The notes beneath the pieces are model-generated. The model had not been told where the DNA came from. It saw only the letters and a list, made by a program, of their open reading frames with translations, and did no database searches. A program made the position numbers and the translations under genes. Below are positions 29,062 to 44,779 of a DNA stretch of 64,000 bases, one piece after another. Position 1 is the first letter of the stretch. The number at the start of each line of letters is the position of its first letter. The DNA is taken from the sequence record OR455461.1. One strand, given 5' to 3'.

Positions 29062-30591
29062 TTATCTTTTTAGTAATTTTTCTAATGCTTTTGAATCTAA
29101 ATCACCTTTTTTACTATCACTACTAACTTTAAGTGCACCAAGTTTATTTTGCTTAATGACTTCAAATTTACGATGATCTGGAAGGTATTTATAAACTATT
29201 TCTCTAGCTTCATCAATTACAATAAATTCTAATAAGAAGAATTCTTTATAGATTTTATCTACTGCACGTCTATCTGAAATTAAATCAATACCTGTCTTAC
29301 GCTTAACTTCTTGAACTTCATCAATACTAATCATTAATGCTGTTGTAGGAATATAGTTACCTGATCTAGAACGAGTAATACCACTAGCTCTATCAACTGT
29401 ATAAATAGAATTTAATTTATTCCAAATAGCTCCAGTACGTCCACGTTTAGAATCTCTAGCAATTTTCTTAGTTCTTTCAGTATCTAATAATAGATCTTTG
29501 AATAATCTTAATTCACCTGTAGTAAATTTAACTAATTTAGTTACAAGATTAGATTTTCTAGATTTATCAGATAGATAGAAAATTACATCTTCAGTTTTAA
29601 CAGGATGAACTACTGTCTTAACACCAAATTTAACTTGTTTAGTTGGATGTTTTACACCTTGTATTGCTTCACCTTTAGAATCTGTTAATAAGAATGTAAC
29701 TTCTGTAGTGACCATTGTAGGTAATGAAGAATTTAATTTATCTTTCTGAATAGTTGTAGTAGATCCAAATTTTTCAGAATACTCTTGTTGCATGTTATTA
29801 GTAACACCTTGCAGTTGTTCTAAACGTTCTTTGAATGCTTGAGCTAAAGGAAAACTGCCGTATGCAAAAGTAGTCCCATTATCTGCTTTCACTTCACGTG
29901 ATTCTTTTAATATATCAAATAATGAACGTGTACTATTGTCTCCTGTTTCTTTTAGATTTTTAAAGACAAATATCTCTTGTTCTCCTTTCTTCGTATCTAC
30001 ATAAATCGTAGCATCATAAGTATTATCATTTCTAGGATCTAAAGATTTCAAAAGTTCTTGTGTATCAAATTCAATAGATATTAAAGTTCCTTCTTCTTGA
30101 GGGTAGTCGTAATTAACAACCTCTTCATTTAATAAATCCATCTCTTCTTTAGTAATTGACATATCATTAATAGATGATAAATTAAATTTTTCATCCGGAG
30201 TTTCTATTAAATAATCATTGACACGTTTTATATCATTTGTTGTACTTTCGTTAAAGTTTACATTATTATGCAAATTACCCATAAATGAAGTAGAATCTTT
30301 AGGATTATATTCTTGTACTGCAGTATTAGTCAGTACAAAATCGAATTCATATGCTCTTTCTAATTCTAATTGATTTCTCATTAATTCTACTGTATCATTA
30401 TCAATAGAATCAGAAGTTACAAGTGGAAATTGTAATATGAAATCACCAGCTTTTCCTCTTAGTGATCTATCAAATGGTCTTTTTCGTTTATTGTTGTTTT
30501 TATAGTTACTGCTTACGTTACCAGGAGTTGTATCCTTAAGTAAACCAATAACATCTGAAAGTATATTTACTTTTTTAGCCAAAACTTTCAC
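29062..30591 (-). CDS. Putative virion (head) structural protein
   Basis: 509 aa, GTG start with RBS, late motif at 30621-30632, FNES/LNEE motifs. Confidence 0.5.
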   Translation of the reverse strand: MKVLAKKVNILSDVIGLLKDTTPGNVSSNYKNNNKRKRPFDRSLRGKAGDFILQFPLVTSDSIDNDTVELMRNQLELERAYEFDFVLTNTAVQEYNPKDSTSFMGNLHNNVNFNESTTNDIKRVNDYLIETPDEKFNLSSINDMSITKEEMDLLNEEVVNYDYPQEEGTLISIEFDTQELLKSLDPRNDNTYDATIYVDTKKGEQEIFVFKNLKETGDNSTRSLFDILKESREVKADNGTTFAYGSFPLAQAFKERLEQLQGVTNNMQQEYSEKFGSTTTIQKDKLNSSLPTMVTTEVTFLLTDSKGEAIQGVKHPTKQVKFGVKTVVHPVKTEDVIFYLSDKSRKSNLVTKLVKFTTGELRLFKDLLLDTERTKKIARDSKRGRTGAIWNKLNSIYTVDRASGITRSRSGNYIPTTALMISIDEVQEVKRKTGIDLISDRRAVDKIYKEFFLLEFIVIDEAREIVYKYLPDHRKFEVIKQNKLGALKVSSDSKKGDLDSKALEKLLKR

Positions 30592-30667
30592 TGCCTTCCT
30601 TATTTTTATTAAGATTTTTATAAAATTATGTTTGATGATGATTTTTAGTAAAAAAAGTAAAAAAAAA

Positions 30668-30711
30668 ATTAGCTATTAATGACTCCATTTAAGGAATCAC
30701 TAATAGCTAAT
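30668..30711 (-). terminator. Intrinsic terminator
   Basis: Stem ATTAGCTATTA...TAATAGCTAAT followed by a long U tract on the minus strand. Confidence 0.7.
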
Positions 30712-30868
30712 TTAAGATGAGCTGTTTTTAAATACTGTTATATTTAAGAAGGTTATCGCTTTGGGCTTTCGCCTGCCATACACTAGAAGCGATAAAATAC
30801 GTATATGACTACTTTCCTGTTTTCCGATACAGTTCCGTTCATTAAGTTTATCTATATTAATTAATATA

Positions 30869-31012
30869 TTAAATATCTCTAAATTTCTTAGGAATATATA
30901 ATAATTCATCTAAAATAAAATTTTCTGTACTCATATTTTTATCTTTATTCTTTATCTCACTGTGAACACTTTCATTCTTCTTTCTTAATTCCTTAATTTC
31001 TTCTAATGTCAT
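30869..31012 (-). CDS. Small charged protein (47 aa), MTLEEIKELRKKNESVHSEIKNKDKNMSTENFILDELLYIPKKFRDI
   Basis: Below the ORF-track cutoff; AGGGGA RBS upstream. Confidence 0.45.
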   Translation of the reverse strand: MTLEEIKELRKKNESVHSEIKNKDKNMSTENFILDELLYIPKKFRDI

Positions 31013-31389
31013 TTATTTTTATTCCCCTATACAAGCAACATATCTCTTACGCTATCTTATAAACATGTGTAGACTATATTAATTTTTCAATTAATATACC
31101 TAAATATAACAGTATAACTTTTTGATTATCGAGTATTTCATCGATTTGGAAATCTTTTATTTAACTCATTTGTCTACAATTGGCGTTTATTTCCTATTCG
31201 ATAACTGGGAGGTCCCAGACCTTCTTCTCAATACTTTATAGGGTAAAGTAATAAGTCAGGCATATTTATAGACTAGTTATAAGAGCGAAGAAAGATGACA
31301 TTCTCTCTTCCATTATTATAATATAAATTTAAAAATTAAATTAAAATAATAAGTGTGCTTTAACATGTACTTATTAAAATTTTAAGAAA

Positions 31390-32379
31390 ATGAATGGTGG
31401 TGAAGAAAGATTGGCTGAAGATGATAAAAGCTTAGAAACTTCTTTTAAGGAAGAAATCAAAAAAGAAGGTAATGTAAAAGAAATAGAATCCTTTAACCCT
31501 TATAGAATGAAGGATAAAAATTCAGAAATATTTAATAAAGGTTTACCTTATATTTTCTTTACTGCTCCTCGTTTAAATTTAGTAGATGGTAATATAAATA
31601 GAGATAGTTTCTTTTCATATCTTAAAAGTGTTAAACCAAAATTATTAGAAACTTTAAATTTTAGTAATTTAAATGCTATAAGTTCAGGTAAACCTTTTAT
31701 TCCAATCCTTTCAAATAGATTTATGGGTATATCTATACCCGATACACAAACTACAATGAAAGAATTCCATGAAACATTCTACGGATATAAACAACACTTA
31801 CCGGTAGGAACAGTTAATTCAGTTGCTGGTGGAGAAATTGCTGTTGACTTTGAAGAAAATAAAAATATAGACATTATACATTTAATAAAAGCTTGGAGTG
31901 AATATATTGAAGGAGTTACTAGAGGTTATATGTATCCTTCAGAAGATGCGAAAAGTAAAAGGTATATAGATTATACTAGCTCTATATATTATTTCTTATT
32001 AGATTTTGATGGAGAAACTGTTTTACATTATTCTAAATACACAGGTTGTTTCCCTATTAATGTACCATATGATATATTCTCTCAAAATGTTGGTGAAGAT
32101 GTAGATGTTCCACATGTATCAGTTAACTTTGCTTATTCGTATAAAGAAGATATGAATCCAGATACCTTAGTTGATTTTAATACAGTATCAACAATGGGAA
32201 GTTCAGTTGCAAATGCTTCAGGTGCTTCTCCTATAAGAGCTAATATAAATGCAGTAACAATGGGTGTTAAACTCAAATACGATGAAATGTATCCTATTAA
32301 TACAGGTAGTCCTTATATTGCAATGGGATCAAGAAGTGAAGATGGATCACAAAATAAATATAGATTAAGATTTTTATAA
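31390..32379 (+). CDS. Tail-tube-fold baseplate protein (T4 gp54/gp48/gp19-like)
   Basis: C-terminal YSKYTGCFPINVP...VSVNFAY signature; lies next to the gp6-like gene. Confidence 0.6.
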   Translation: MNGGEERLAEDDKSLETSFKEEIKKEGNVKEIESFNPYRMKDKNSEIFNKGLPYIFFTAPRLNLVDGNINRDSFFSYLKSVKPKLLETLNFSNLNAISSGKPFIPILSNRFMGISIPDTQTTMKEFHETFYGYKQHLPVGTVNSVAGGEIAVDFEENKNIDIIHLIKAWSEYIEGVTRGYMYPSEDAKSKRYIDYTSSIYYFLLDFDGETVLHYSKYTGCFPINVPYDIFSQNVGEDVDVPHVSVNFAYSYKEDMNPDTLVDFNTVSTMGSSVANASGASPIRANINAVTMGVKLKYDEMYPINTGSPYIAMGSRSEDGSQNKYRLRFL

Positions 32380-43743: not shown

Positions 43744-44180
43744 AAATATGTATAAATTAACCCTAACCTCTTCGACTAATTCAAAATCAATCTGTAGGTT
43801 AGGGTTAATGTTACTTTTACGAGAAAAGTATAAAGTTGCTTTAATAATTTTTTATATCCTATAAAGCATAAGAAGGATTAAAGAAACCAATATATGCATG
43901 GAACATATTAGGAATCTTATAGTGATATTTTAATAGTCTAGTTTTTCTTATATTAGGAACTAAAACTAGAAAACCTAAAGTGTATTAAAGTCAGATACTT
44001 ATCACAAATTAATGTAAAATAAGTCCTCTTTAATACTTCTTTTTTAATACTTTTTTACAACTAAAGATATGCCTTAACTTTAGTTGAATCTAATAAATTA
44101 AGTTTGGCATATCACTTAATTTATATTTTATTTATAGCAGGTCTGCAGCCAAGCTATAAGGATGATTAATCCTATAGGGT

Positions 44181-44265
44181 TGTTCCTAATGAGATTCGAA
44201 CTCATAACCTACAGATAAATTTTAATTCATAAATCTGTACGCTCTGACCATTGAGCTATAGGAAC
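44181..44265 (-). tRNA. tRNA-like RNA with an expanded (20-nt) anticodon loop; identity undetermined
   Basis: Acceptor GTTCCTA/TAGGAAC, D arm GCTC-AATGGTCA-GAGC, T arm ATGAG-TTCGAAT-CTCAT, anticodon stem TACAG/CTGTA around a 20-nt loop. Confidence 0.7.
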
Positions 44266-44625
44266 ATAGAAATTTAAAAAAAAATTAAAAGAGTACATTT
44301 ATCATCTATGCACTCTTTTAAGTAAATAAATATATAATAATATCTATTAATTTTTAATTATACGTAAGGAGGCGTATGGATTTCTATTTAAAACCATGAC
44401 ATATTAAAAATAGAAACAAGAGAAACCAAAGAAACATTTTTAAACCAACAACGAGTGACAAAGTAAGTTATAATAGAATTTAATCTATTATATTTTTTAG
44501 TTAAATCAAAAACTAAAAAAAATCTATAATAATTTGACGAGAATCATTATAGATTTATACTATATAGTTAATTAATATTTTTAAATAAAATTTTTTTAAT
44601 AAATAGGAATTTTAGACCAAAAAAA

Positions 44626-44695
44626 AGCTTATCCGAGGGATCGAACCCCGGACACATGATGAAAATCATTGCTCTACCAACTGAGCTAGATAAAC
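44626..44695 (-). tRNA. tRNA-like RNA with a shrunken (4-nt) anticodon loop; body resembles tRNA-Phe
   Basis: Acceptor GTTTATC/GATAAGC, D arm GCTC-AGTTGGTA-GAGC, ATGAT-TTTC-ATCAT, T arm CGGGG-TTCGATC-CCTCG; no encoded CCA. Confidence 0.7.
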
Positions 44696-44779
44696 TTTCT
44701 TCATTATTATAATATATGTTTATATTTCACTATATTACGCTTTTAATAAATATAATCTTCTATATCAATTTCATTTTGT

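Follow-up and report, generated by a model that had tools for sequence, protein, structure and literature searches.

A discrete transcription unit between two virion genes

The 265-kb genome of AH12, an AR9/PBS1-like jumbo phage of Staphylococcus (record OR455461), was investigated in a window of 64,000 nucleotides (nt). A minus-strand unit lies there between a virion structural gene of 329 amino acids (aa) (31390-32379, plus strand) and a 509-aa virion gene (29062-30591, minus strand). It consists of a small open reading frame (ORF), preceded by its ribosome-binding site (RBS), within a leader of ~300 nt and a trailer of ~210 nt (Table 1). An original prediction, made from the sequence alone, had proposed here a structured RNA of ~650 nt, lying between a promoter-like motif and a terminator, which would loop out the ORF and might occlude its RBS. 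We found that the stretch is a real, discrete minus-strand transcription unit of a highly structured RNA, as indicated by the promoter, the terminator and the breaks of RNA contigs at its borders, and that this mRNA is at its most constrained, and at its most elaborate, in the parts that are not translated.

We compared 14 phage versions of the locus, comprising 11 haplotypes from about 5 lineages. INPHARED gave 10 relatives including AH12, being distributed in clade A (AH12, Machias and PB50) and clade B (MarsHill, Madawaska, SA1, LY01, S6, PALS_2 and DC4). Four loci were newly taken from public assemblies through the neighboring 329-aa protein (65-70% protein identity) and represent clade C (L206, L209 and L207) and clade D (L208). 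In the intergenic regions of these four, the early promoter, the terminator, the late promoter and a small ORF are all present. Exact-motif and protein-guided searches of IMG/VR revealed no relatives, and the loose pattern TAAATATGCC...CCCTATA produced only chance matches in IMG/VR and metagenomes.

In AR9, the virion RNA polymerase, which is injected, recognizes the early consensus AAATATATATTAT-N6-G(+1) (PMC5312081). The AH12 promoter (31330-31318) shows a single mismatch to it, with G at 31311, while clade B matches perfectly, and the motif heads the unit in all 14 versions, which is the promoter arrangement of AR9-type early units. In MarsHill, 29 genes are preceded by such a motif (bioRxiv 10.1101/2020.12.14.422802). 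Transcription of the AH12 unit early in infection is predicted from this consensus and by analogy with a mapped early start of AR9. At the other end, the terminator stems have three unrelated sequences (AH12, Machias and clade B), all of them of 18-21 bp, and a sequence AACA-N6-TA, matching the AR9 late consensus (PMC5312081), is found directly behind the T-run of AH12 and in all homologous loci.

Contigs from two tick metatranscriptome runs of different studies, near-identical in sequence, cover 30731-31290 (X5) and 30726-31294 (X6). They are separate from the neighboring contigs (ending at 30586 and starting at 31405), with different depths (15.5 vs 75 and 8). In a DNA run, on the other hand, a single contig (29515-32010) spans both borders of the unit. 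The RNA contigs break where the DNA contig is continuous, which supports a discrete transcript, although these assembled contigs from undated metatranscriptomes give neither strand nor exact ends. Near-identical phage sequence (28400-34000) is present in the tick metatranscriptomes (X5 and X6) and in indoor metagenomes, which suggests activity of AH12-type jumbo phages in staphylococci from places other than farms and sewage.

The original prediction could not assign the RNA to a known family, and Rfam 15 agrees. In the flagged region, including the ROOL, GOLLD and OLE models, only terminator-hairpin noise was found with E up to 10, and the four distant homologues returned nothing with E up to 0.1. 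At the gathering score, the whole window contains only two tRNA-like matches, both elsewhere (44178-44266 and 44625-44696, minus strand), which Rfam scores as tRNA and to which ARAGORN assigns no anticodon. A group I intron was considered and rejected, since the unit has its own promoter and terminator, lies between genes and matches no model, and the order of its helices does not appear to fit P3-P9.

Five clade-B phages, MarsHill (L004:3400-4470), LY01, S6, DC4 and SA1, have 1-3 extra small early genes before the structured RNA. These lie between the virion gene and the RNA with a second copy of the early promoter, and two of them share a repeated module formed by the RBS and the N-terminus.

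Long-range helices and pseudoknots of the leader and trailer

Since a plain MAFFT alignment of ten versions misaligned two groups, we used an anchored block alignment and curated the helices by hand. A script check confirmed that every curated strand exists at a consistent position and pairs, and the pair counts were also made in scripts. For nine helices in this hand-made alignment, compensatory changes were found in 47 of 68 curated pairs, one-sided changes in 6, and 15 pairs are invariant. In register, 96-100% of the cells pair, against 19-68% when the 3' strand is slid by 1-3 nt; exchanging the partners of different clades leaves a mean of 38-97% paired, depending on the helix. Folding of the AH12 RNA is also beyond chance, with z = -3.35 for the 595 nt without the terminator (none of 100 shuffles as good) and z = -6.6 including it. 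All five complementarities listed in the original prediction were re-derived by script, and its expectation that long-range helices would be conserved and covary across related jumbo phages is borne out by these counts for most of its pairings. This comparison of versions is stronger evidence than the folding energies.

The strongest long-range helices, c and d, were absent from that list, as was the pseudoknot of the 3' domain. Helix d, the inner clamp between the 5' and 3' regions, occurs in 10 haplotypes with 9 of its 14 pairs compensatory and 99% of the cells paired. Helix c, the outer clamp, is compensatory in all 9 pairs among 6 haplotypes, each clade having its own version; the seven different versions are all complementary (7-10 bp) and occupy a fixed place relative to d. 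Of the 6 haplotypes tested from clades A and B, 5 include both helices in their minimum-energy folds. An equivalent of the clamp appears in the own minimum-energy folds of three of the four new RNAs but not in that of L207, though its strands are complementary. With RNAalifold, both clamp helices emerge in clade B and helix d emerges in clades A, C and D; the program independently recovers d, X, the hairpin CUGGGACCUCCCAG and part of hairpin H5. The looping out of the small ORF by 5'-3' pairing is upheld by the covariation of helices i-a, c and d.

Among the pairings first proposed, helix iii is kept in every version, with all 7 pairs compensatory among 8 haplotypes (0.29-0.48 in the slid-register control vs 0.96 in register). 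The pairing described as a 13-bp three-way junction survives in its first half, helix i-a, in which 4 of 7 pairs are compensatory among 5 haplotypes. Its second half, UUAUCG (31204-31199) with CGAUAA, is found only in the AH12 group and was rejected: in clades C and D, what follows the hairpin lacks complementarity to the 3' strand, and CGAUA pairs locally with UAUCGCUU as helix Z, so that the supposed junction is a 7-bp helix beside a hairpin. The segments of helix ii do pair, with the covarying register shifted from the proposed one to CUCUUAU (31285-31279) and GUAAGAG (31050-31044). Only 2 of its 7 pairs are compensatory among 3 haplotypes, both from L207 (CCUUUAU/AUAAAGG), and L208 supports the register initially proposed (CAUAUAAC/GUUAUAUG).

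Two nested pairs of helices cross each other, one formed by i-a and iii and the other by c and d. Further crossings arise from helix ii and from the pairing of the H2 loop with the RBS. The suggestion that crossing helices imply pseudoknots holds for i-a and iii with c and d, and also for X and Z, which form an H-type pseudoknot. A single compact pseudoknotted fold is possible because the curated helices share no nucleotides, except for helix ii overlapping hairpin H5, and most have ~7 bp; alternation between states may also take place. Helix iii is present in the minimum-energy fold of MarsHill. A fold forced to contain iii alone costs 1-5 kcal/mol in four clade-B haplotypes, and forcing iii costs 6-13 kcal/mol in clade A.

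Within the 3' domain, the hairpin W is compensatory in 4 of 4 pairs among 4 haplotypes (CUGU/ACAG, AAGU/GCUU, UUGU/GCAA and GCUG/CAGC) and its loop keeps GG(A/U)AA. Helix X has 6 of 8 compensatory pairs (6 haplotypes) and helix Z has 5 of 7 (5 haplotypes, from clades A, C and D). In the leader hairpin CUGGGACCUCCCAG, 1 of 5 pairs is compensatory among 3 haplotypes, the third pair being G-C, G-U or A-U. This hairpin and the AH12-type 3' domain are present in clades C and D and absent from clade B, which, judging by this distribution, has most likely lost both.

The other local elements (H1, H2, H3, H4 and the terminator) keep their shapes with changed sequences. The stem of H2 is completely different in AH12, in Machias and in clades B, C and D; its loop nevertheless retains CCCU (UCCC in B and C). 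Both GAAA-capped hairpins of the original prediction exist: H4, with compensatory changes in Machias and an A>G variant in X5 that preserves a G-U pair, and the one at 30773-30764, which corresponds to the variable hairpin Y. In the hairpin CUGGGACCUCCCAG, the sequence from the loop through the 3' strand is ACCUCC(C/U) in clades A and C, which we take to resemble the anti-Shine-Dalgarno (anti-SD) tail of 16S rRNA, and ACCACCC in L208. An ORF of 65 codons (30712-30909, minus strand) overlaps the 3' domain, but it has no RBS and starts in a variable region; it is most likely spurious and kept open by the conserved RNA sequence.

Table 1. Positions of the features of the AH12 unit in the window
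Feature	Position	Strand	Sequence	Remarks
Whole transcript	30657-31311	minus		~655 nt, from predicted +1 to end of terminator T-run
Early promoter (virion RNA polymerase type)	31318-31330	minus	AAATTTATATTAT	followed by 6 nt and predicted start G 31311
H1	31287-31310	minus		5'-terminal hairpin from +2; in all clades, with different sequences
Helix ii, 5' strand	31279-31285	minus	CUCUUAU	pairs with 31050-31044
H2	31227-31255	minus	loop CCCUAUA	C-rich apical loop at 31243-31237
Helix i-a, 5' strand	31219-31225	minus	AGAAGGU	pairs with 30753-30747
Leader hairpin	31205-31218	minus	CUGGGACCUCCCAG	clades A, C and D; absent from clade B
Helix iii, 5' strand	31172-31178	minus	UGUAGAC	pairs with 31074-31068
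Helix c, 5' strand	31163-31169	minus	AUGAGUU	outer 5'-3' clamp; pairs with 30723-30717
Helix d, 5' strand	31102-31115	minus	AUACUGUUAUAUUU	inner 5'-3' clamp; pairs with 30745-30732, 14 bp
H4	31075-31098	minus		GAAA-capped; stem longer, different and compensatory in Machias
Helix iii, 3' strand	31068-31074	minus	GUCUACA	
Helix ii, 3' strand	31044-31050	minus	GUAAGAG	inside hairpin H5 (31061-31028)
Ribosome-binding region	31023-31031	minus	UAUAGGGGA	11 nt before ATG; complementary to H2 loop
Small ORF	30869-31012	minus		47 codons, charged peptide
Hairpin W	30817-30832	minus	CUGU-AUCGGAAA-ACAG	3' domain
Helix X	30775-30809	minus	GUCAUAUAC / GUGUAUGGC	30809-30801 with 30783-30775; encloses 5' strand of Z
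Helix Z	30754-30794	minus	UAUCGCUU / AAGCGAUA	30794-30787 with 30761-30754; crosses X, H-type pseudoknot
Hairpin Y	30764-30773	minus		GAAA-capped, variable; between Z strands, 3' domain
Helix i-a, 3' strand	30747-30753	minus	ACCUUCU	
Helix d, 3' strand	30732-30745	minus	AAAUAUAACAGUAU	
Helix c, 3' strand	30717-30723	minus	AGCUCAU	
Intrinsic terminator	30657-30713	minus		21-bp stem (30713-30666) and T-run
Late promoter of the 509-aa virion gene	30621-30632	minus	AACA-N6-TA	downstream gene; outside the RNA, marks end of unit

The small ORF, its ribosome-binding site and the proposed role of the scaffold

The ORF is annotated as a hypothetical protein in AH12, Machias and PB50. An ORF of 23 to 52 codons stands behind the same RBS in all 14 versions, in very AT-rich sequence, and most of the peptides share the weak motif D/N-F-I/L…Y, which is at the N-terminus in L208. 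For this reason we consider the unit an mRNA rather than a pure non-coding RNA, and the earlier suggestion of a large phage non-coding RNA is not supported. The Staphylococcus peptides are charged and rich in K, E, D and N, with no hydrophobic stretch or membrane segment. Searches with the peptide found no family in Pfam and PHROG, and an index of 5.8 billion proteins returned only the peptide itself. The ratio of nonsynonymous to synonymous differences (pN/pS) is 0.10 in the closest pair (LY01/S6) and 0.38 between AH12 and Machias, but it varies from 0.73 to ~1 in other pairs, so that pN/pS alone is weak support for coding.

Within the unit, conservation is lowest in the body of the ORF, where AH12 and Machias are ~60% identical. 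In the same comparison, a block of the 3' untranslated region (UTR) differs at 4 of 138 positions, whereas synonymous sites have diverged by 0.10 in the genes upstream, by 0.44 in the gene downstream and by 0.68 in the ORF itself. The X5 strain differs from AH12 at 4 positions of the ORF, all of them amino-acid-changing in our codon reading, and at 2 positions in ~420 nt of UTR, with no helix broken. The UTRs are therefore more constrained than the protein.

The loop of H2 is complementary to the Shine-Dalgarno (SD) region in every clade, with duplex energies of -9.3 to -10.9 kcal/mol. Thus, the complementarity of CCCUAUA to UAUAGGG noticed in AH12 is general, and its flanks change together: CCCUAUA:UAUAGGG in clade A, UCCCC:GGGGA in clade B, UCCCUUU:AAAGGGA in clade C (plus CAUU:AAUG in L207 and L209) and a core of 5-6 bp, CCCUA:UAGGG, in clade D (L208). 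From this complementarity we infer that the H2 loop masks the RBS, through a contact that nested folding cannot model; on its own, nested folding leaves the AH12 RBS mostly open. An anti-SD helix with the 3' UTR proposed by RNAalifold in clade B (helix e, GGGGAG/CUUCUC) was rejected as the main partner of the RBS, since the changes in its 3' strand between L206 and L207 follow the 5' strand of helix i-a and not the RBS, which is unchanged.

We suggest that the unit probably is a self-locking, nuclease-protected early mRNA, possibly with a dual function. It would be a monocistronic message made by the injected virion RNA polymerase, whose leader and trailer would together build a single conserved scaffold, with multiple pseudoknots, around the gene of a small and rapidly evolving protein. 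The ends of the RNA would be tied together by helices i-a, d and c (~28 bp in total), which would place the ORF within a closed loop. Protection of the ends from host exonucleases would come from the hairpin at +2 and from the 21-bp terminator. With its loop acting as an anti-SD of the UCCC type that masks the RBS, H2 would turn the folded full-length RNA into a stable, translationally locked store of message, and the synthesis of the small protein would need the opening of the scaffold by some factor or condition.

Several points weigh against this proposal. Nested folding leaves the AH12 RBS mostly open (probability of being unpaired 0.62) and closes it only in three clade-B phages, through another partner; the occlusion of the RBS originally suggested is thus retained as a conserved complementarity between loop and RBS, but it does not appear in the nested fold of AH12 alone. 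The crossings of i-a and iii with c and d, and those of ii and of the loop-RBS pairing with other helices, allow the elements to form together or to alternate. The helices were curated by hand on 11 haplotypes of ~5 lineages, with some registers chosen by us. The RNA contigs, without strand or exact ends, could include DNA carried over into the libraries. Finally, UTR blocks better conserved than the peptide fit a function centered on the RNA equally well.

A mainly RNA-level or dual-function product, whose scaffold acts in trans with the ORF second or subordinate, is the main alternative, though a tentative one. Its C-rich loop could act on the SD regions of host or phage mRNAs, as in RNAIII and RsaE, or the scaffold could be a protein-binding platform. 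Besides the higher conservation of the UTR blocks relative to the ORF and to nearby synonymous sites, the UCCC/CCCU of the H2 loop is a regulatory motif of S. aureus, and stable small RNAs (sRNAs) of Firmicutes are built with a 5' hairpin and a strong terminator (PMC2790875). Moreover, a structured early RNA with a 5'-3' helix persists at the syntenic sites of Bacillus phages and other relatives while the peptides differ (15 aa and amphipathic in AR9, 24 aa and hydrophobic in L210). Against it, the complementarity of the loop tracks the flanks of the unit's own RBS between clades, as expected for a partner in cis, and the ORF and RBS are kept, with the peptide motif in most versions.

A related and rather speculative idea is that of a new class of large, multiply pseudoknotted sensor or effector RNA, which would bind a ligand, a host factor or the ribosome, free the translation of the ORF and act on host messages through its UCCC-type loop. 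If so, it would be a coding riboregulator of phages, with 550-660 nt and as complex as ROOL or GOLLD.

A scaffold that only stabilizes, shielding a brief early message from RNase J1, RNase Y and 3' exonucleases with no gating of translation, seems unlikely. The +2 hairpin, the 21-bp terminator and the clamp of c and d, which ties both ends, would serve it well, as would the RBS predicted open in AH12. However, the conserved complementarity between loop and RBS would be left unexplained, and so would the elaborate 3' pseudoknot domain with its conserved loop nucleotides.

We consider it very improbable that the unit is part of a system of the type I toxin-antitoxin kind, in which a toxic peptide would be encoded by a locked mRNA, to be opened by processing, and an antisense RNA would act against it. 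The likeness to type I toxin mRNAs pointed out in the original prediction is valid for the RNA architecture, with 5'-3' fold-back and a putatively masked RBS, as in hok-type mRNAs, and the distant syntenic RNAs of AR9 and L210 do encode short amphipathic or hydrophobic peptides. It is not valid for the Staphylococcus peptides, which are highly charged and have no membrane segment. In addition, the only sigma-70-like match on the opposite strand (31295-31322) lies in the divergent promoter region and is no candidate for an antisense promoter, phage promoter motifs not having been searched there, and the phage is lytic, the unit being one of its early genes.

A pure non-coding RNA with an incidental ORF is hardly credible, since the low conservation of the ORF body, which would favor it, is outweighed by a frame of 23-52 codons behind a conserved RBS in 14 AT-rich versions, with the motif in most of them, and by pN/pS of 0.10-0.38 in the closer pairs.

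Syntenic early RNAs and comparison with known systems

In AR9, an early start was mapped by differential RNA sequencing at 181724 and tabulated as a 340-nt 5' UTR of g214, with a separate late start at 182012 after a terminator; g214 itself is late (0.7/21/1427 fragments per kilobase per million, PMC5312081). We observed at this site (L011:3630-3882, minus strand) an early RNA of ~253 nt that carries no annotation and is not treated as an RNA of its own in PMC5312081; a 5'-3' helix of 13 bp encloses its 15-codon ORF (MFKALRTVLSIIGLQ). AR9 and PBS1 resemble AH12 in the place of the unit between homologous late virion genes, in the type of early promoter, in having an own terminator followed by a late promoter, and in the long-range 5'-3' helix around a tiny ORF. 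The AR9 RNA differs in its size (~250 nt), its 15-codon ORF and its amphipathic peptide, with no sequence similarity, and helices i-a, iii and X/Z and the CCCU loop were not found in it, as far as inspected.

The more distant L210 (2040-2520, minus strand; 47% protein identity) contains at the same site a 255-nt early RNA with a 24-codon ORF. The peptide has a hydrophobic core and a charged tail, resembling a type I toxin and unlike the Staphylococcus peptides. L211 also has a structured early RNA of 330 nt there. The occurrence of shorter early RNAs with other tiny ORFs in AR9, L210 and L211 suggests that the site, and not the peptide, is the ancient feature.

The AH12-type RNA is conserved at one syntenic site in the AR9-like jumbo phages that infect Staphylococcus, and Bacillus phages have simpler counterparts of it. 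By analogy with AR9 it would be among the first units transcribed by these phages. It offers a compact natural model of how RNA folding controls translation and decay in Firmicutes, and it points to an unstudied early function, of the peptide or of the RNA, in phages considered for therapy against S. aureus.

Among known systems, the icaR mRNA of S. aureus, in which UCCCCUG pairs with the SD sequence UAGGGGG (PMC3868564), shares with the AH12 RNA the Staphylococcus host, a C-rich anti-SD within the same mRNA, an (A/U)GGGG RBS and long-range UTR pairing. The pairing of the anti-SD with the mRNA's own SD is seen in the AH12 group and its relatives as a complementarity present in all clades. However, the anti-SD of icaR is in the 3' UTR, where it forms a duplex cut by RNase III, whereas the one of AH12 is in the loop of a 5'-leader hairpin (H2, 31243-31237), and the 5'-3' pairing of AH12 (i-a, c and d) is separate from the RBS, in a fold far more elaborate than that of icaR. 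The Rsa RNAs and RNAIII of S. aureus carry UCCC loops (PMC2790875). Like the AH12 RNA, RNAIII (hld) and the Rsa sRNAs have several hundred nt, a small ORF in a structured RNA, an unpaired loop of the UCCC type, a 5' hairpin and a strong terminator; they differ from it since the AH12 loop matches its own RBS, the fold is rich in pseudoknots and there is no sequence relation.

ROOL, GOLLD and OLE, large and ornate non-coding RNAs of bacteria and phages, are similar to the AH12 RNA in size (550-660 nt), in the many covarying helices and in the phage context, but the AH12 RNA matches none of them in Rfam even at E = 10 and has a conserved coding frame. In hok-type mRNAs, the 3' end folds back onto the 5' end and the RBS of a small ORF is masked; the AH12 RNA resembles them in its fold-back and in its putatively masked RBS, and differs from them by its charged peptide and by being an early gene of a lytic phage. 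Long-range UTR pairing and anti-SD masking are each known singly in bacteria. To our knowledge, no mRNA has been described in which a gene of 23-52 codons, with a start site that is probably masked, is surrounded by a dozen covarying helices together with several pseudoknots and a 5'-3' clamp.

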